This document shows positions 4,489 through 18,497 of a DNA stretch of 18,497 nucleotides, one piece after another (the stretch's first letter is position 1; each line of letters opens with the position of its first letter). The position numbers were made by a program, and so were the translations under genes. The notes under the pieces were generated by a model. It worked only from the letters and a program-made list of their open reading frames with translations, searched no databases and was not told the DNA's origin. Where the stretch lies: contig JANKJI020000002.1 of assembly GCA_024626585.2 (NCBI GenBank), positions 10,441,612 to 10,460,108 on the forward strand, read 5' to 3'. Source of the DNA: Ginkgo biloba (Eukaryota; Plantae; Ginkgophyta).

Positions 4489-4707
4489 GTGGTTGATTAT
4501 TGGCAAGTGATAGTAGAGAAAGTTGAGGTTCCAATACTATTGGATGGTACAAATATGTTGAACCTTGTTGGCATTGAGCTAAAATATGTTGAACCTTGGT
4601 GGTTGATTATTGGCAAGTGATAGCAGAGCAAGTTGAGGTTCCAGTACTATTGGATGGTACAAATATGTTGAAACTTGTTGGAACTGAGCTAAAATATGTT
4701 GAACCTT
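4489..4707 (+). repeat. Tandem duplication, 2 copies, 110-bp period
   Basis: GTGGTTGATTATTGGCAAGTGATAG...AAATATGTTGAACCTT at 4489-4597 and 4599-4707, with 6 mismatches in 109 bp. Each unit carries the 16-mer AAATATGTTGAACCTT (or a 1-mismatch variant) twice. Confidence 0.97.
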
Positions 4708-6070: not shown

Positions 6071-8774
6071 TATACTATATATTAAAAATATGACTTCTAA
6101 AAAAAATGCATCCATCCATTTAAAATATACACCAATCCAATCAAAGTATAAATGCGAATCCAAGATAAATATGTTACCAATACTAATATATTACTATATA
6201 ATTATAAAAACCCATGTCTCTTCGAACCCCACATTAAAAAAAAAAAAAAACCCAATTACAAAATAATCTANNNNNNNNNNCTTAAAAATAAAAATAAAAT
6301 CTCTAACCGATCACCCCCTTATTAATGAATGTACGGTATCTTCTAATATCGAATAACAACATGTAAATAGAAATTGGTTAAATAATTATTAAATATCAAA
6401 TATTATATTAAATTAATAAAAAAACATTAATAAGAACTTGATCGAATCAACTCTATATATCAATATTAAATGCATTTAAGATTTGATGGNNNNNNNNNNN
6501 NNNNNNNNNNNNNNNNNNNNNNNNNNNNNNNNNNNNNNNNNNNNNNNNNNNNNNNNNNNNNNNNNNNNNNNNNNNNNNNNNNNNNNNNNNNNNNNNNNNN
6601 NNNNNNNNNNNNNNNNNNNNNNNNNNNNNNNNNNNNNNNNNNNNNNNNNNNNNNNNNNNNNNNNNNNNNNNNNNNNNNNNNNNNNNNNNNNNNNNNNNNN
6701 NNNNNNNNNNNNNNNNNNNNNNNNNNNNNNNNNNNNNNNNNNNNNNNNNAGGATAGCTTTAAAAACCCTTTGTTCTTTGACTTCCACTTTTCATAAATGG
6801 TCACCTTGACCTTCACCCACTGCTCCTTGGCTTCCACTTATCATAGTCTTCTCATAGATCCTTCAGACTCGTTGCTCCCTCATTCATAGATCCTTAATCA
6901 ATGGCCTCCACTTGACCCTCGTCTCTCTTTCTCTAACCTTTATCCTTCACCTATGGCACACCTTCCCTTTGCTTTGCCACATTTGTCTCCTAGATCTGTT
7001 CTTCTTCCATGACCCTTAATGGATCTCAATCATTTGGACCTTATGTCCTTCTTCCCTTGTTCCCTCTCACATCTGCCCACTCGACCCCTCTACTCACTCT
7101 CTTCTCCTCTATTCCTTGTCACATCCTCCTAGAATGCACCTACTAATGGAGCTATCCTGCTCCAATTCAACTCCGCATACTACCCATGATCATCTCTCTC
7201 TCCATCTTATCCTTCTCATCTACCTTCACCACCTGGACCTCACATCTTCTTCTAAGTTCTCTTCCTTTGACCTGTTCTCTCGTCGTCTAAGTGCCTCTCT
7301 TATTAGGAGTCCTTTCTTTTGTCTCCTTGGGGTCCCTCTATGCCTCCTCATCTTAGGATTCTCCTCCCATCAAAATTATTCTTGTCACCAACTTATTTTC
7401 CTTACTTGTGCGTTTCTTGCCAAAACTTTAAACTCGCCTACCTCTCTCCTTTGTTCCTAGTTGGTGGAGCATTAAATGAGCCATTCAATTCAGCTATGTA
7501 TAGAATGAATACTTTTGTGTGGGTCACCTACTTGCCATAACGCTAACTGCTTCAAAGCTTAATTTTATTGCCATTTTCTTTTCTCTCATTAGGCACATTG
7601 CTCGTTCACTAAAATCAAGATGAATGACCTAAGCCATTCATTAGCCCATTTTCCTCTACTAAATCCTTTACACCATTCGCCACCTTGTCTTCCTGTTCGC
7701 TGGGTTTGTCGTAATTTGCCAAAACCTTCTGCATTGTTCATCGATATCTATTCCTCATTCGTCAACCTTGGTTTTGCTAAACCTCATCCGTCTTTTAGTG
7801 AACTCCCTTCATCGTCATTGACCACTTTATCCATACTTTGGTCCATTCGTTGACCTCTTTTTTCTATTTGACAAATGACCCTCTTTGACACTAGCTATTC
7901 TTCTTTTCTTCCTCCTTTTCGCTTGTTCATTGNNNNNNNNNNNNNNNNNNNNNNNNNNNNNNNNNNNNNNNNNNNNNNNNNTTTGTTCACTTAACTCAAC
8001 CCACCGATTCCTCAAAATTATGCATAACTGCCTTCACCAAAACTAATTCGGCCAAAATGGATGATGCCCCTACATCACACAAGTAAGGACTAGAATCATA
8101 AAAGAAAGAAAAAGCATGTCTGATCGACCACCTCTTATTAATGAATATAATAATAATCCATCAATATTATTTTGATCAAGTCATTTTAACATGTTAACAT
8201 TAAATACATTAATATATTTGAGTTCAATCAGTGGCATATTTCATATATCATGATAATCTANNNNNNNNNNNNNNNNNNNNNNNNNNNNNNNNNNNNNNNN
8301 NNNNNNNATTAAATACATCAAACACATTTAAAATTTAATGGATGGAAATTATTTACTGCGAATGACCTCTATTTAATAACTAAGCATTTTAATTTCAATG
8401 TTTAAAAATTAATGAATCTTGATAAATTTGCACATAATATGAGGAATTCAATTCAAAAGTGATTAGTTTTATTGATTTCAAAACATAAAGTCCATTTAAC
8501 CACCTCCTTATTAACGAAGACATGATTAAAAAATGCATTTAAGATTTCACGGGTGGCAATTATTTGCCAAAGGTAGGGACTAGTAATAAATTATAAATTA
8601 ATCTAAATGAAAAGTATGTGGATAACTATTTGAATCCATACTTAATTGTTACTGGCTTAATGCTTAATTAAGCCATACTTAATATTAACTATTATTACTT
8701 CAAAATAATATTAAAGTTTTACCAAAGTTTTAATAAAATAATATATCATGGCAATTATTTTCCATGGGTGTGCA

Positions 8775-8817: not shown

Positions 8818-9431
8818 GCATGTGCGTGCATATATGTCACAGGTTTGAACTAGTATGTGTATATATGTGTATACATATGAATGCACACACATATGTGTGC
8901 ATGCGTGTGCATATGTGTTTACATCACCATGTTGGTATGTGTGTGCACTTATATCTAAGAAATTAAGCAACCCTATATATGTGTGTACGCACATATGTGA
9001 ATGCCATCACTGTGTGAGTCACATTGGGTTGGTTATTTATTATGGCTATTATTACTTATCAAGGATTCTCACACTATGAATTCCAACCTGTGCAATGCAT
9101 TAGACATGAACNNNNNNNNNNNNNNNNNNNNNNNNNNNNNNNNNNNNNNNNNNNNNNNNNNNNNNNNNNNNNNNNNNNNNNNNNNNNNNNNNNNNNNNNN
9201 NNNNNNNNNNNGAGACAAGTTATATTATATCTAAATGTATCACCTTATAAGTATGGTTAATGTAAATAATTTTTAATTCTTAAGTCTTATCTTAGGAATA
9301 TTATTTCTAGAATTTATTTCCTAAGTTTGAGATAGGACATTTAATTTGGGCTTGTGAGGTATAAGAGTCTTTTACTCCTTATTTGTCAGTAGTGGTAAGT
9401 AGACATTAGTCTTTTGTAATTAGTGAATTGG

Positions 9432-11402
9432 TGATGTAGGAGCACCAATCAAATTTACAGGGATTCAAGTGTGATAGCTAAATTTTGAGGAAGTGGCAAG
9501 CAAGTGTTAGGAAAATAGAATAAACCATTCAACAAATGACCTAAGTGGCTTGATATTGTTCGAAAAAATTGGAGAAATAATTTTGGAAAATGACCCATAG
9601 GGTTTGACAAATAAGCTAAGGCACAATGACAAACAAGTTTGTAGCTCAGTGAATGAGCTAAAGAGTGGGGAGAAGAAAATGGGTTGATGATGTAGTGGGG
9701 TGTTCACTAGATAGGAAAGAGGTGGTGACAAATGAACCAAAGGAATAGAATATGGTAAATGACCCATGAAGTAGAAGGGAATTCATTAAACTTGGGAGTG
9801 TAGTCAGCGAATGGTGTATGGGGAAGAAAAAAAGTAAAAAGGACCAATGATGTAATTGGACATTCGTCGTATGGGTAGAGGCATGCAGTGAATGATGTAA
9901 AGGAACTAAAAGTTGAGAGAAGTGAGAAGATGCAGTTGGACATTTGTCAAGCAGTGAACAAAGGTGGAGCGAATGGGCAAGGTTGTGAGGTAAGTGAAAA
10001 GTGGATGGTGAACAAGGAAGGATATTCATTAAAGGATGAATAGAGCTCAGAAAATAATCCAAAGAACCATAAGTGGAGGAAAAATATTGACAAACAAAGA
10101 GGTTCATTCATCAAGGGTGACGAGTGGCTCAATGAATGAGTGAATGAGAGTAGTGAACAAAGAGAAATTTTCATTGAACAATAAATAGAGGGTGGCAAAT
10201 GGGCCTAAGATCCAAAGGAGAGAGAAATAGCTAACAAATAGCTTAGGTTATTTATGAAATGAGTCAAGGGACTTAGGTAATGATGTGAAGGAGTTGAGTT
10301 CAATGATAAAAAATAATGGCAATCATAAATTAATGCTAGATATGGAGGATTTATGATAATTGATGACTTATGCGGGAGAAGTTAATCCAACTACAGATAG
10401 AAGTAAAGGCGCCGCGGGGGAAATGATGGCGAAGGAAATGAAGCCCACCAATTGACTTAAATGAAGGGATATTTTTGGCTCTTGAGGTAAAGGGGCACAT
10501 ATAGTCATAGTTGAGGAGGAAGGAAGGGGGAAGAAGAGAGTAGGTGAGATAGACATATATAAAGGAAGAGAAGGCACAATAGGTGCATGAGGCCAGAGGG
10601 AATGAGTAGGTCTAAGGAGGGATGCAAATGTTCATTGGAGGAATAACTAACCAAACGAAAGAGGGAGAAGGAGGAGAAGTAGGACAAAGAGGGCTATGGG
10701 GGAGGATGAGTTGTGCAACAGAGAGTGCATAGGAAGAAAGATGTCTTAGATGCACAATAGAGCATGTAGAGTAGAGTCAGGATTGAGGAAATTAGGGCCA
10801 TGTGGATGTATAAGAGAGCCATGAAGAATGTGGAAGAGGTAAGAGAGAAAATAGCAAGGAGGAAATGAATATGACAAAACTATTGATAAAGGCAGTTGGG
10901 AAGGAGGAACTGTGAGCAGTGGAGAAGAGAGGAAAGAGGTAGCGATAAAACTATCGATAGAGGAAGGTATAAAGTAGAGGAAGAGAAGAGAGATAGAAGA
11001 GCAAACTAATAGAACTATCAATAAAGGAAACTAGATAAAATAGAGAAGAAGGGTGGACTGTGTTTGGAGAATCCCTCCCAAAAGGAGGTCAGTGATTTTG
11101 TAAATGAACCCCTATGGGGATGTATGTAAATATGTGAGTAGGTTAGTGGCCCAAATATAATGTAAATAAAAGTTATTATGTAATGAAAGAAATTTGTTTA
11201 TGAATTCCTTCTAATGTGTATACTTGATATGCGGTGAGCAAGTGGCTTGCATGCTAATGAATTTATGTTTTCTATTATTATTTTAAATTATGTGTGAATT
11301 ATATGTTGTTGAAATGTGAACAAAAGGGTAAAATGGAATTGAACAAATATCCCTCCAGAGATCTTAGGTACAAGGGCGATATCTGGGAGGTTTCCTACAT
11401 CA
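9432..11402 (+). mobile_element. 5' LTR (1971 bp) of a CRM-clade Ty3/gypsy element
   Basis: Perfect 10-bp terminal inverted repeat TGATGTAGGA...TCCTACATCA (TGATG/CATCA termini are typical of CRM). It is followed after 3 nt by a PBS and is homologous to 17124-18398 and to 6750-8077 (minus strand). Confidence 0.92.
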
Positions 11403-11405
11403 TCT

Positions 11406-11416
11406 TGGTATTAGAG
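11406..11416 (+). promoter_or_regulatory. Primer-binding site complementary to initiator tRNA-Met
   Basis: TGGTATTAGAG, one C>T change from the consensus TGGTATCAGAG, 3 nt after the LTR end. Confidence 0.88.
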
Positions 11417-12075
11417 TAAATGAACTTGTGAGAAAGCAATGAGGAGATCATAGGTTACACATTGAAAAGCTAATACCATAGGAAGGCTCTAAGAATAGAT
11501 CCAAGTATTGTCTAAATTAGTGGTTGAGGGAGTGAAGTGCATAATAGAGAAGATTGTGGAAGTGGTATAGTAGTAAGATAAGTAAAGATGGTTATTAGAA
11601 GGGTCAAAGGAGGAATGAAGNNNNNNNNNNNNNNNNNNNNNNNNNNNNNNNNNNNNNNNNNNNNNNNNNNNNNNNNNNNNNNNNNNNNNNNNNNNNNNNN
11701 NNNNNNNNNNNNNNNNNNNNNNNNNNNNNNNNNNNNNNNNNNNNNNNNNNNNNNNNNNNNNNNNNNNNNNNNNNNNNNNNNNNNNNNNNNNNNNNNNNNN
11801 NNNNNNNNNNNNNNNNNNNNNNNNNNNNNNNNNNNNNNNNNNNNNNNNNNNNNNNNNNNNNNNNNNNNNNNNNNTGCTTAATATTCTATATTCATATCAG
11901 TGAAGGTTTCACTGATGAGACATACTATAATTTCCAATTGAGGAGATTTCCATCATCATCGATAGGGGTCTATTTGCTAAGATCCTATAAATAGGCTACG
12001 TCGACGTAAATTTTGTTAAGGGAAGATCACCTAACCGATAAACACTCAGGTAATTTCTAATTACCCCATGTAATT

Positions 12076-12243: not shown

Positions 12244-13260
12244 ATGATACCTAGAATGGACATAACTCTTATTAATATGATGGAGGCTTTGGTGAAGAAG
12301 GTTGATGACCTTGAAAATGAATTAAGAAGGCAAAGACGTACATAGAATGATGTTGAATCCAAACCTAAATGTGAAGGACCAAAACAAAGTAAACCAAATG
12401 AAATGAATATGATAATGAGATTATTGAAGAATAAATACGGTGGATAAAAGGTGGAAGTATCAAGATTCAATGGTAATTTGAATCCAAAATACCTATTGGA
12501 TTAGGTAAGATCCATGGAGAAGTATTTTGATTAGGAAAAAATAAATGACCCCAAGAGGGTGAAATTTGCATGTACCAAGTTGATGGGACATGCATCCTTA
12601 TGGTGGGAGAATCTACAAAAGGAGAGGATACATAAAGGTAAGGAAAAGGTTTAGACATGGAACAAGATGGTGACTAAACTCAAGGGGAAATTCTTACATG
12701 AGGAATACATACAAAGATTATTCAGAGAATTTTATAATTTGAGACAAAAGGATAAAAGTGTACAGGGGTACATTGATGAATTTTACAAGTTGTCCATCAG
12801 GAGTGAGTATGAAGAGAATGAAGAGTAGTTGACCACAAGGTATGTGAATGGGATTATTTGTTTTATTCAATATGAAATCGAAATGCACTGAATGAGGACC
12901 ATAGAAGAAGCATATCAATTGGACTTAAATGCAGACGAGAAATTGACCCAGAGTGTAAGGAAGAGGCCAGTCACTAAGGAAATTGGATCTTCAATGTAGA
13001 AGTGGAGAGGAAGCATGATAACATGGATCCGAGGGAGTAGGTCTAGAAGAAAAAGAACTACAAGTTTTAGGCATGAATTATTGTTGAGGCTAAGAGGAGA
13101 ATAAATTGTCTAAAGGACTAGAGGGCAAGGAGGATTTATACCGCAAAGAGGACAAGGATTTGGTGGAAATTTTAATGTGACAAGAAGATATGTAATGTGC
13201 TACAGGTGCAGAGTTAAAGGACATAGGGAATTTGAGTGTCCTATTATAAATGATGGCATA
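12244..13260 (+). pseudogene. gag: CRM-type gag with zinc knuckle
   Basis: Frame 1: KVEVSRFNGNLNPKYLLD*VRSMEKYFD..KRVKFACTKLMGHASLWWENLQKER..TWNKMVTKLKGKFL..FYNLRQKDKSVQGYIDEFYKL..RYVNG. CX2CX4HX4C knuckle CYRCRVKGHREFEC at 13198-13239. Multiple in-frame stops. Confidence 0.93.
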
Positions 13261-13411
13261 CCAAGGAGGGAGGAAGAGAGATCAAATTTGGTTAAGGGGA
13301 AAGACATATCTGAAATATCTATCATAAAAAAGGATGCATAGAGTTTTCTAGTACGCAGAATATTGTTGGCACTAAAAATGGCAAAAATGGGTGAGTGAAC
13401 CAAGGCGTGGT

Positions 13412-13612
13412 TGAAAATTTTCTAAGATAAATCAATAAACTAATTAAGGAGGGAAACAAAAGATCTTAGGAGTTCCACAAATGGATAGTGGAAGTCAATA
13501 AATAGACAATGGAGGACAACAAACATCCAACAAAGTTCAACAAATAACCATGGGAGTTCAATGAATGACCTATTAGAGTTGAGTGAATGGCCTAAGTGAA
13601 ATTTAGTGAACA
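13412..13612 (+). repeat. Degenerate 21-bp tandem repeat in the gag-protease spacer, in frame
   Basis: Clearest units at 13468-13572: AGGAGTTCCACAAATGGATAG / TGGAAGTCAATAAATAGACAA / TGGAGGACAACAAACATCCAA / CAAAGTTCAACAAATAACCAT / GGGAGTTCAATGAATGACCTA, translating as RSSTNG*, WKSINRQ, WRTTNIQ, QSSTNNH, GSSMNDL. Confidence 0.85.
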
Positions 13613-13638
13613 AGACAAAGGCAGAAGAGGATTTGGAA

Positions 13639-14010
13639 CAAATTAGGAATATTTTTAGGACAAAATAAAAAGCTAGAGGTAGATTGTATAAGGTCATCAT
13701 TGATAATGGAAACTGTGAGAACATGGTGGCCGAGGAGATGGTCCAAAAGCTAATTTTTCCTTGCCAAAAGCATGACTCACCATATAGGATTTATTGGTTC
13801 AATAAAGTGGGTAAGATCAGCATGAAGGAAATATTTTTGGTGATGATGTAGATTAGGAATTACCATGATTAGGTGTGGTGTGACATTGTACCCATAGAAA
13901 CATGTCACGCTCTATTGGGGCAATCATGGCAATTTTATGGGAAATCCATCCATGATGAAAGAAAGAACGCCTACACCATCATAAAGGAAATAAGAAGGTT
14001 TAATATCATA
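13639..14010 (+). pseudogene. CRM-type aspartic protease domain
   Basis: QIRNIFRTK..KVIIDNGNCENMVAEEMVQKL..HDSPYRIYW..VWCDIVPIETCHALLGQSWQF..HDERKNAYT. The catalytic Asp codon is at 13702, in the same frame as gag. Confidence 0.92.
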
Positions 14011-14145: not shown

Positions 14146-15275
14146 GAGGTGAGAGGATTGTTGGAGGAATTCAAGGATATCACTCTAGATGAATTACAAG
14201 CTAGTTTTCCACTTGAAAGAGGCATCACCCATCATATAGACTTGATCCCAAGGTCTAGTTTTCCAAACCAAGTACCATGCTAATAAAATCCTCAAGAGAA
14301 CGAGGAGATAAATAGGTAGGTGCAATTGTTACTAAAGAAGGGGATGATTCAAGAGAGTTTGAGTATGTGTGCAACACTCACACTTTTGACATCAAAGAAG
14401 GATGTAATGTGATGCATGTGTGTGAATTCAAGATCCATAAATAATATAACTATAAAGTACATATTTTCAATGCCATAGATGGACGATATGATGGAATTCT
14501 TGGCAAACATTTCATTATTTTTGAAGGTGTACCTAAGGAGAAGTTATTATCAGATCAAAATTTGAGAGGTAGATGAGTGAAATATGGCATTCAAAATAAG
14601 AGACAACTTGTACGAGTGGAGAGTTGTTCCATTTGAGATGTTGAATGCACCTAACACACATGGATTTGATGAACATAGTCTTGAAATATCTCATAGGTAA
14701 ATGTGTTATTGTGTTCTTAGATGATATTTTGGTTTTTAGTAAATTGAGTGAGGAATAGGTGGATCACTTGAGATTGGTGTTTGATATACTCTAGAAGGAG
14801 TATTTGTATGTGAATTTGAAGAAAGAAAACTTCTTTCAAAGAATCTTTGGGGTACTTTGGGTTTGTAATTTTCCAAGAAGGATTGAGAATGGATCCGAAG
14901 AAGGTGAAGGAAATCTTGGAGTGGACAACACTGAGTAATGTCACTGAGGTGAGGAGTTTCTATGGATTGGACATATCTTATCGAATGTTCATAAGGAATT
15001 TTAGTATCATTGTAGCTTCTATGATATATTGCATCAAGGGGAAGGCCTTTGAGTGGACAAATGCAACACAATGCAACTTTGGGGTGTTAAAGAGGAAGGT
15101 GACGGAAGCCCCATTTTTAGCATTACCATAGTTTGGTAAGGTGTTTAAAGTTGAATGTGATGCTTCAGTCATTGGAATCAAAGTAGTGTTGATCAAGGAA
15201 GGCAAGATGGTAGCATTTTTTAGTGAAAAGTTGAATGATGCCAAAAATAGGTATTCAACATATGATCTGGAATTT
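14146..15275 (+). pseudogene. pol: Reverse transcriptase and RNase H of the CRM element
   Basis: LLEEFKDI..RGITHHIDLIP..KGMIQESLS..KKD..MCVNSRSINNITIKY..YYQIKI..LYEWRVVPFEMLNAPNT, a frameshift near 14658, then VIVFLDDILVFSK (FLDD 14714-14725)..MDPKKVKEILEW..EVRSFYGL..FKVECDASVIGIKVVLIKEGKMVAFFSEKLNDAKNRYSTYDLEF. Confidence 0.96.
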
Positions 15276-15507: not shown

Positions 15508-16983
15508 GATGAATAATGAGGTCATAGGGTTTAAATCCATTAAATATATATGTAGGGGATAAGGAATTTGGTTAAGTGATGGTGTATCTCAATAATCTGG
15601 TGGATACTAAGGGATAGCTCTATGTTGATTATTTCTTACAAGACAGATACTTGTTTAAAGGCAAGAAACTTTTCATATTGGATAGTTCCATGAGAGATAA
15701 CATCATTTGAAAATTGCATAATGGTGGATTGGGAGGCCACTTCAGCATAGACAAGATAGTGGTAATGGTTGAAGAGATATATTATTATCCAGGTTTGAGG
15801 AGGCAGGTGAGTAGATTCATGAATAAGTGGATTTTTTTAAAATGGCAAAAGGATAATCCCATAATGCCAGGTTGTACAAATTGTTATCCATTCCAAAAGG
15901 ACCATGGACAAAAATCACAATGGACTTCGTATTGGGACTTCCCTACACCCAAAAAATCAATGAATCAATGTTTGTTATGGTAGATAAATATTTAAAAATG
16001 GCACACTTCATCCAGTTCAAGAAGATGAATGGTGAAAGTAGGACATCAAATTTGTTCTTTTGAGAAGTTATCAGATTAGATGGGATGCGAAGAAGAATTA
16101 CCTCATTTTGGGATAAAAATTTATTAATCCATTTTTGGTGAATGTTGTGGAATAAATTGGACACTAAGTTGCAGTACAATAGTGCATATCACCTGCATAT
16201 CGATGGGCAAATAGAGGTGGTAAACAAGTATTTGGAAAACTTGCTGAGGAGCTTAGCTAGGAGAAAACCCAAGTAGTGGGATGTAGTATTAGAACATGAT
16301 GAATTCGCCTATAAAAACTTAGTGAATCAATCACACATATTAGTTTCATTTTAAGTAGTGCATGGGAGAGCACCAAAGACAATGGTGGATTTGGTGGAGT
16401 TTTCAATCAGTAAATGGATCAACAATGATGCTAAGGCATTAGCGGAGGATATAAAANNNNNNNNNNNNTGCATAATGAGGTGAGACAACAACTAGAAAAG
16501 AGAAGTAGTAAGTAGAAAGAGGCAATTGGTTAGTTGATAAGGCATCAAAAGTTTAAAGAAGGGGACATAGTCATGGTCTACCTAAGGAAGGATTGATTCC
16601 TAAAGGAGACATACAACAAACTAAAGTACAAAAATATCTAGCCTCGCCAGATCTTGAAAAAGATCAATGTGAATGCCTNNNNNNNNNNNNNNNNNNNNNN
16701 NGATATTTCACCTTTGTTTAATATTATAGACTTATGCAGGTACCATAAAAGAGATGAGGAAACCTGGGTGCAAATGGAAGATTGCCAGTAGCAAATTTCA
16801 ATGAAGAAAAGAGAGGAAACCATAGAGGTCATAGATAATAAGGAAGTTGAGATGCAAGGATAAAATTATTGTAGATACCTGGTGAGGTGGGAGGAATTAC
16901 TGCCTGAAGATGATACTTGGATCACTAAGGAGGGATTGTGAAGGTTGGGTGAGCAGAAATAACAATGCTTCGAGGAGAAATAT
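15508..16983 (+). pseudogene. Integrase with C-terminal chromodomain
   Basis: LHNGGLGGHFSIDK (HHCC zinc finger start), GPWTKITMDFVLGLP..FVMVDKYLKMAHFI..SAYHLHIDGQIEVVNKYLENLLRSL, FKEGDIVMVYLRKD..YNKLK..ILKKINVNA, then IEVIDNKEV..YCRYLVRWEELLPEDDTWITKEGL (about 16820-16940). Confidence 0.93.
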
Positions 16984-17123
16984 NNNNNNNNNNNNNNNNN
17001 NNNNNNNNNNNNNNNNNNNNNNNNNNNNNNNNNNNNNNNNNNNNNNNNNNNNNNNNNNNNNNNNNNNNNNNNNNNNNNNNNNNNNNNNNNNNNNNNNNNN
17101 NNNNNNNNNNNNNNNNNNNNNNN

Positions 17124-18398
17124 GAATATACTAGACTGTTCGATAAACAACCTAAACGACTCAATGTTTTTTAGCAAAACTAGAGATTTTATTTTGGCAA
17201 ATGACCCATGCGGTTCGACAAATGAGTTAAGGCATGGAGAAAAATAAGTTCATAGCTTAGCGAACAAGCTAAAGAGTGGGAAGAAGAAATATCCTGATGA
17301 TGTAGTGGGATAATCATTGAATAAGAAAGAGGTGGCGACAAATGGACCAAAGGATTGAAAGATGGAAGTAGAANNNNNNNNNNNNNNNNNNNNNNNNNNN
17401 NNNNNNNATGGTGTATGGGAAAAAAAAAAAGTAAAAAGGACCAATGATGTAGTTGGATGTTCTTTGAATGGGAAGAGGCATGCGATGAATGGTGTAAAGG
17501 AATGGAAAGCTTAAAGGAGTGAGCGGATGTCGTTAGATGTTCATCGAGCAAAGAACGAAGTGGAACAAACAAAGGTGGTCATTTGTTGAATGATGAACGA
17601 ATGTCAACAAATGGGTTGAGTAGTTGAGGGATTATGAAACAAAGAGCGATCGTAGTGAGGCATTCGTTGAAAAAGTGGCTTAAGGAATGGTGCACAAGAA
17701 AAGTAGGGGTCAACAATGCAAGATAGAATGACATGGAAAAATTAAAATTGAATGGGAGAATTCAATGAGGCAAGGACCAATCATGTTACTTGAGTTAATA
17801 TGCTTGTAAGCAGAGTAATGGTATCCATGAAGACTCCACTAACCAATTTGTAGGAGGAGCAATTTTTGGCACCTAGGAGAGAGAAGGGGAGGTAGGGAAG
17901 GAGGAACTAATGATGAGAAGGTTAGAAGCATGAAGCTAAAGGAGAATAATATGAACAAGAAAAGGAAAAGAGAACATAGATAAGGACAATCGACTGCAAG
18001 GAACAATAAGAGGGAGGTAGAGTTAAGGAGGAATAAAAGGACAAACTTTGGAAGCTTTGGATGAACATAAAAGTCTAGGAAGAAAAAAGGATAGGAAAAA
18101 GGTCAGGTTGGAGATGCGAAATTCAAGTGGCAGAAGGAGAAACTAGAAGATTTGGGTGTGTTCTTGAAGAAGAGAGTTAGCAATTAGTATGTGTTTTATA
18201 AATTTTCCCCAAAAGGGATACTGACAATCCCTATAATCATAATAATTCCCTTTGAGGATTTATGAATGTAAAAATCATTATCTTTTCTTTTTAAGGAATC
18301 AAATTTTACGTGTTCTCTTAGTGTTCCCTACTTTGTTGAATTATGAATTTCTCCCCTTGAGCAAGAAAGTAGAGGGTGACTAGGGTTGTGCCACATAA
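17124..18398 (+). mobile_element. CRM-family LTR in 3' position; start hidden in gap 16984-17123
   Basis: 17190-17570 aligns colinearly with 9580-9975. The terminus TTGTTGAATTATGAA..GTAGAGGGTGA..GGG..GCCACATAA (18398) aligns with TTGTTGAAATGTGAA..GTACAAGGGCGA..GGG..CCTACATCA (11402). Confidence 0.85.
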
Positions 18399-18497
18399 TC
18401 CCCCACCTTCTTCATTTGGGGATTAGTCCATTTGTAAATCCACCATCTATGTGTCCTTCTTCACATATAGGTGTCCTCATTTTCTACGTTTATCATA
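18399..18497 (-). pseudogene. Possible fragment of the gag C-terminus of another gypsy element, forming the insertion target
   Basis: The minus strand translates to YDKRRK*GHLYVKKDT*MVDLQMD*SPNEEGGG. This resembles CDxKWxxGHxC followed by an acidic stretch in chromoviral gags if both TAT codons derive from TGT. Only 33 codons are visible. Confidence 0.35.

Follow-up and report, generated by a model that had tools for sequence, protein, structure and literature searches.

Nested cryptic sub-repeats around a degenerate nine-base motif in the LTR of a decayed Ty3/gypsy element of Ginkgo biloba

The nine-base pattern YRRYRAAYR, which is strongly over-represented in the first part of the 5' LTR of an old Ginkgo biloba retrotransposon, appears to be the best-preserved core of nested tandem sub-repeats that occupy roughly the first 800 bp of the LTR. 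The most likely reading overall, to which we give about an even chance, is that of a reiterated cis-regulatory module in the U3 region, which multiplied while the element lineage was active.

The LTR and its element

The window, which is the whole stretch of 18,497 bp analyzed here, has a GC content of 31%, is strongly depleted of CpG (observed/expected 0.26), and is interrupted by 14 N runs. The motif lies in the 5' LTR of a degraded Ty3/gypsy element. The features of this element and of a further LTR of the same family are as follows.

9432..11402, + strand: 5' LTR of 1971 bp, with TGATG at 9432-9436 and CATCA at 11398-11402
11406..11417, + strand: PBS-like site TGGTATTAGAGT, 3 nt past the 5' LTR end, two transitions from the tRNA-Met complement
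12655-12825: Retrotrans_gag, in the internal region of the element
13114-13338: zinc knuckle, in the internal region of the element
around 14645-15128: RT-like pieces, the RVT_1 match at 14645-14755 being weak
15711-15980: integrase H2C2, in the internal region
16864..16938, + strand: chromodomain remnant at the integrase C-terminus (Pfam Chromo, E 1.1e-4, 22.4 bits)
17124..18497, + strand: 3' LTR, its start hidden in the N run 16984-17123 and its end outside the window
6786..8077, - strand: inverted LTR of the same family, with TGATG at 8077-8073 and an uncertain lower end

The contig of a second copy starts fitting precisely at 9432, the same position as the 5' LTR start. The RT-like piece at 14820-15128 matches proteins bearing RT/RNase H domains. 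The Chromo match scores below the gathering threshold because the piece is only 25 aa long, and it is followed by a stop codon (16939-16941) about 100 bp short of the inferred 3' LTR start. The 3' LTR is homologous to 9513-9975, with an identity of about 69% and about three transitions per transversion, and no CpG is common to the 5' and 3' LTR copies, so that the element must be very old. On the minus strand, the inverted LTR opens at 8077 with this TGATGTAGG terminus too; beyond the terminus it is barely alignable, and its overall similarity is weak. Two N runs (7933-7981 and 16984-17123) fall within the starts of two LTRs and a third (9112-9211) sits about 220 bp upstream of the 5' LTR, so the LTR 5' ends are readable only in part.

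The copy analyzed is a dead, low-copy element. Few extra family copies were found at a likeness of at least 80% in three DNA runs; in the same three runs the depth was low and no satellite-like amplification of the arrays was seen. A homologous-protein search with the integrase piece as query returned no relatives. With the RT piece as query, HMMER pointed to a Logan contig of 1.6 kb that lacks an LTR and to four loci from assembly GCA_026074375.1, the source of the nearest RT relatives; the last locus from this search, an angiosperm element with 48% GC, has no motif cluster and is uninformative on this family.

The first-pass annotation had assigned the LTRs to the CRM family. Neumann et al. 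(2011, PMC3059260) describe CRM group C as having TGATG...CATCA termini and report an LTR length of 299-1225 bp. The 5' LTR has these termini and the inverted LTR also starts with TGATG, the PBS is of the tRNA-Met type, a feature that is not clade-specific, and a type II-like chromodomain ends near the 3' LTR, as it does in other chromovirus clades. The termini, PBS type, chromodomain position, and gymnosperm host thus all resemble group C as described there (PMC3059260). The LTR, in contrast, is 1971 bp long and exceeds 299-1225 bp, which is a reported range rather than a strict criterion. The element is therefore a candidate CRM member, the label being compatible with its structure. LTR sub-repeats of the present kind are not described in those parts of PMC3059260 that were searched.

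Several neighboring features were also observed. A repeat of about 140 bp (9264-9406) adjoins the LTR upstream and has a summed contig depth in the thousands, compared with 5-30 on the LTR; a few poly(A) RNA reads fit it, with a likeness below 90%, and it may be a SINE or MITE-like family. An isolated open frame at 4935-5195 matches the Suv3 DEXQ-box helicase domain (Pfam E 3.3e-18); a mitochondrial RNA helicase gene is its probable source, as an exon or as a pseudogene fragment. Two adjoining 109-bp direct repeats with 94% identity lie at 4489-4707, and RT-like open frames from another, unrelated retroelement fragment are found at 348-1043 on the + strand.

Enrichment of the motif

The array on which the following analyses center is located within the first half of the 5' LTR.

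9530..10240, + strand: motif array with 16 exact sense YRRYRAAYR sites and near-matches at 9584, 9967, 10048, 10118, and 10172

All 16 + strand matches listed by the first-pass annotation were recovered at their positions, as were the eight in the 3' LTR (17141-17613) and the minus-strand matches in the inverted LTR, which number eight at 7603-7932. Its rough expectation of about one site proved accurate: 2000 local dinucleotide-preserving shuffles of 9530-10240, used as the background model, yield 0.81 sites on average and never more than 4, which the observed count of 16 far exceeds.

The pattern had been picked by eye, and as a post hoc control we enumerated all 9-mer patterns in which two letters are fixed and the other seven are R/Y. 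Within this class, YRRYRAAYR alone takes first place in 9530-10240 (16 observed, 0.79 expected, log10 P -15.2), the best pattern from any of 200 shuffles reaching only -7.0, and it therefore survives correction for the choice by eye. In the same enumeration it ranks first in the 3' LTR, fifth in the inverted LTR, where most higher-ranked patterns are close variants, and third in 13440-13640 of the internal region, where YARYRARYR and YARYRRAYR are two of its close variants. As controls, the distal LTR, which is equally purine-rich, and two other internal stretches contain 0, 1, and 2 sites, at or below expectation.

A composition artefact of the purine-rich, CpG-depleted strand was considered, the + strand being 69% purine and poly-purine patterns being common in it. 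The shuffles preserve this composition at the dinucleotide level and yield 0.8 sites against 16, the pattern remains first of its class after family-wise control, and the distal LTR, just as purine-rich, lacks sites. We regard this explanation as ruled out, its probability being practically nil.

The comparisons below cover three LTRs, two of them homologous, and natural sequences only. The 16 sites do not represent 16 independent events, since many have been copied by descent inside duplicated blocks.

Nested repeats beneath the motif

The DNA between the motifs was initially taken to be free of tandem repetition. This view is not supported: nested cryptic units of 21 nt and about 81 bp, together with duplications of 145-160 bp, were found in it. 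The recurrent spacings of 20-22 bp, including those to the near-matches 9584 and 10172, had been described correctly. The description as a same-orientation array is right as regards the excess of sense sites (16 to 5) and wrong as regards exclusivity, because five antisense copies (0.09 expected) are interleaved with them.

9584..9668, + strand: four-unit run with spacings of 21, 22, and 20 bp
10130..10214, + strand: second phased run at 21 bp (10130, 10151, near-match 10172, 10193)
9701..10113, - strand: five exact antisense motif copies (9701, 9861, 9941, 10023, 10105)
9691..10176, + strand: six cryptic tandem units of about 81 bp, each with an antisense motif, 16 bp, and a sense motif

In three of the five exact antisense copies of the 5' LTR, an exact sense copy begins precisely 25 bp downstream, and five such exact pairs with the 25-bp spacing are found across the three LTRs. 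If near-matches are included, the antisense copies lie at 9701, about 9781, 9861, 9941, 10023, and 10105, which is 80-82 bp apart, with a sense copy about 25 bp after the antisense copy in each of the six units. These units align in register almost gap-free, with an identity of 0.41 (shuffled maximum 0.37), rising to 0.70 (shuffled maximum 0.61) if transitions are counted as matches. About 50 of the 81 columns are alike, the most invariant being those of the antisense motif. On a larger scale, blocks of 145-160 bp are duplicated in the array region. Intervals of 20-22 bp make up 9 of the 33 between successive sites, and intervals of 41-42, 63, and 78-82 bp also recur.

The 21-nt unit can be seen in flank positions that lie outside the pattern. 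Position +10 is a purine in 30/30 sites, and the information at positions +12 to +14, +20/21, and -21/-22 lies above the 99th percentile of controls with random anchors, while positions -20 to -2 are at background and the information also falls to background after +14. The similarity among units is thus concentrated in about 15 nt. The repeats emerged only under transition-tolerant and motif-anchored analyses; TRF detected no array in the region, and in a plain autocorrelation the peaks, at 145, 21, and 81-82, were no more than weak.

The basic unit is about 21 nt long: the core occupies positions 1-9 and is followed by a purine (+10), by conserved positions (+12 to +14), and by pyrimidines (+20/21). 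In each of the six higher-order units of about 81 bp, an antisense copy is separated from a sense copy by a spacer of 16 bp, and later duplications of 145-160 bp added more. This structural description, as nested and decayed sub-repeats, is in our judgment very probable.

The tandem architecture at 21 and about 81 bp also speaks for a neutral decayed minisatellite. In that case a 21-bp unit prone to slippage would have spread in the LTR and the gag-protease linker without service to the element, and the 9-mer would be no more than the least scrambled part, picked by eye. Tandem repeats inside transposable elements are common, with Retand and others named in the references of PMC3059260. The Ginkgo arrays share with such repeats of plant LTR retrotransposons, which can seed satellites (Retand, for example, cited in PMC3059260), the occurrence of short-unit arrays inside a Ty3/gypsy element, and differ from them in being short and cryptic. 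A simple decayed minisatellite should keep residual similarity evenly over its whole unit; such evenness was not found here, the information being concentrated in the core and at +10 to +14. The similarity is sharply concentrated in about 15 nt although the core has three hypermutable CpGs, the upstream flanks are at background, and a simple array does not account for the spacings of 27, 39, 52, 54, and 66 bp. We judge the neutral minisatellite possible rather than probable, and its remaining strength comes from observations on the internal array and on the decay of the copies, described below.

Traces of CpG in the core

The claim that the three YR positions of the motif descend from CpG was examined in 32 LTR sites. 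The CA:TG ratios at the three positions are 11:11, 11:12, and 10:17, whereas TA occurs in only 5, 3, and 3 of the 32 sites, compared with about 35% TA among background YR dinucleotides. CG itself is retained in 5, 6, and 2 of the 32, in copies that have decayed less. Comparison of the 5' LTR with the 3' LTR gives nine TG/CA pairs. The homologous pairs 9530/17141 and 9647/17258 are as originally given, and the YR differences between homologous sites are TG-versus-CA and CG-versus-TG/CA pairs, as methyl-CpG decay predicts. The sequence therefore supports a derivation of the three YR positions from CpG, with a qualification: for positions 1-2 and 8-9 it applies generally, and for positions 4-5 it applies to GCGAA/GTGAA-type sites and does not extend to ACAAA-type sites. 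The few read variants at motif positions (9612 T>C, 9634 C>T, 9629 A>G, 9807 G>A) are transitions, in line with expectation, and are too few to weigh. We propose that the core originally held up to three CpGs, which decay through cytosine methylation would have turned mostly into TG or CA.

The 5' LTR part 9513-9975 is poorer in CG than its 3' partner 17124-17565 (5 versus 11), and over wider spans the CpG observed/expected ratio is 0.30 for the 5' LTR part and 1.05 for the 3' LTR part.

A second array in the coding region

The same unit is also found in the internal region of the element.

13494..13625, + strand: internal 21-bp tandem array of 5-6 units of the LTR type, between the gag zinc knuckle and the protease

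A PWM trained on the LTR sites alone, with 2 upstream and 6 downstream flank positions and a cut-off of at least 8 bits, gives 5 matches in 260 bp (13381-13640) versus 2 in the other 5.3 kb of internal sequence, and no + strand match in the first 6.8 kb of the window. The short spacers of the internal array resemble the spacers of the LTR runs, and the ratio of sense to antisense sites is 5 to 0 there, compared with 16 to 5 in the LTR. The array lies in the frame common to both flanking coding pieces, which is now interrupted by stops.

An array of the same unit within a coding region suggests a sequence prone to tandem amplification and speaks against a functional module; that the unit was amplified here too is what the minisatellite explanation would lead one to expect.

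The two arrays could also be read as serving one purpose. Conceivably, the 21-nt unit recruits a single element-wide factor through the U3 and gag-protease arrays, be it an element-specific or host protein or an RNA-binding protein on the genomic RNA, with the CpG core making the recruitment methylation-sensitive; we consider this improbable. Another reading places the action in the genomic RNA, where the sense-strand unit would serve packaging, export, or stability, since the U3 and the gag-protease region are both in the transcript and in the same orientation. The sense bias in both arrays fits such an RNA-level element, and the inverted pairs can form stems of 6-10 bp, one of them with a z of -3.2. 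However, shuffled sequences fold as well as five of the six hairpins, the CpG-rich cores and the antisense copies point to DNA, and about 6% of one run yielded no RNA reads on the LTR. We find an RNA-level element very unlikely.

Decay between the copies

Between the 5' and 3' LTRs, of which 460 bp are well aligned, the identity is 0.74 for the motif, 0.81 for the 10-bp flanks, and 0.74 for the spacers, and the corresponding transversion rates are 0.052, 0.052, and 0.068. Core positions 5-7 are unchanged in 25/25 comparisons, a figure subject to ascertainment bias, as the sites were picked for a match in one copy, and to A being a stable base here. Compared with the spacers, the core is better kept among the paralogous units and not between the two LTRs, with three copies only available. 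Beyond the first 460 bp or so, the 5' and 3' LTRs align poorly and show a shift of about 190 bp, which on sequence grounds is consistent with a gain or loss of repeat units.

The lack of extra conservation of the core between the 5' and 3' LTRs is a further point for the minisatellite. Equal decay of motif and spacers is what dead copies would show; function gains no positive support from it. Taken with the internal array, it leaves the neutral minisatellite a strong rival of the regulatory module.

The inverted LTR, which has diverged almost beyond alignment, still keeps eight sense sites with the same flanks, a retention of the core that a neutral minisatellite explains poorly. Two observations thus argue for past constraint in the active lineage: the concentration of similarity in about 15 nt despite three hypermutable CpGs, and the core kept in a much-diverged LTR. 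The concentration must predate the insertion, because the later decay is not site-selective except at CpG.

Position upstream of the promoter and comparison with known systems

In LTR elements, U3 is where the native promoter and enhancer reside (PMC13192763). One feature of the 5' LTR helps to place the array relative to it.

10556..10563, + strand: TATA-like box TATATAAA, the only one in the LTR

The array starts 100 bp inside the LTR and stops 316 bp before this box, so that its sites lie about 320-1030 bp upstream of the box, from which we infer that the array is most likely in U3, upstream of the promoter. Poly(A) RNA reads on the LTR numbered 0 in about 6% of one run. We propose that the array acted as a reiterated cis-regulatory, putatively protein-binding, module that was multiplied by slippage or unequal exchange and that, in the present dead copy, would merely be decaying. 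Whether the array had a regulatory function is, in our estimation, an evenly balanced question. To our knowledge, none of the TGACG/as-1, CGACG element, DRE, AuxRE, HSE, W-box, and MYB core motifs fits the CpG-restored core at all sites.

Reiterated elements are familiar from several LTRs, among them Tnt1 with its BII boxes, HTLV-1, whose U3 has three 21-bp repeats, and MLV with its 75-bp enhancer repeats. The LTR of Tto1 has a functional element of 13 bp that is likewise reiterated (Takeda 1999, cited in PMC10794571). The Ginkgo array resembles these four in having a short core with many repeats upstream of the promoter and tandem duplication, and in a spacing of about 21 bp, roughly two helical turns. 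It differs from them in its core, which is CpG-rich and present in at least 16 copies, in the nested 81-bp units with inverted pairs, in the second array in the coding region, and in its function, which is putative here.

The analogue first proposed for the motif was the arrays bound by VANC proteins, a system that had been described accurately (PMC5735166). The target motif of VANC21 in VANDAL21 is YAGTATTAY, AT-rich and without CpG, and its binding has been demonstrated (PMC5735166). Like the VANC21 arrays, the Ginkgo array is a dense set of a degenerate 9-base motif, mostly in one orientation, that grew by tandem repeats and is found in several element parts; it has 16 sense sites in 711 bp within repeats, with the 5 antisense sites interleaved. 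VANDAL21, however, is a DNA transposon with a dedicated VANC protein, whereas no such gene was seen in the Ginkgo element.

A comparable platform in Ginkgo would be a dense array through which an anti-silencing or chromatin factor, encoded by the element or by the host, is brought to the LTR and element body, its recruitment being possibly sensitive to methylation. The precedent of VANC21, with its dense, mostly one-orientation 9-base motif grown by tandem repeats (PMC5735166), would favor such a platform, as would the occurrence of the CpG-rich motif in more than one part of the element. No gene for a VANC-like cognate protein and no extra ORF were seen in the decayed internal region, where the recognized pieces are all gag-pol (gag, zinc knuckle, RT, integrase, and chromodomain), and an antisense copy is built into each 81-bp unit. 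On balance we find a VANC-like platform very unlikely, and the reiterated U3 module remains our preferred reading.

Implications

The motif array is a familiar kind of promoter-region repeat and not a demonstrated new binding-site system. A 2026 preprint (PMC13192763) describes the U3 regions of plant LTRs as largely uncharacterized in their regulatory content, and our literature search found no paper on gymnosperm LTRs. Should the unit prove to be a true element-wide recruitment site, it would be a retrotransposon counterpart of the VANC system. At present it is mainly a well-documented instance of cryptic sub-repeats in U3. A core that truly served as a binding site would provide a concrete, testable cis-element for one old gymnosperm chromovirus family, and also an example of how methylation decay can hide such elements, since the motif is visible only in the purine/pyrimidine code.
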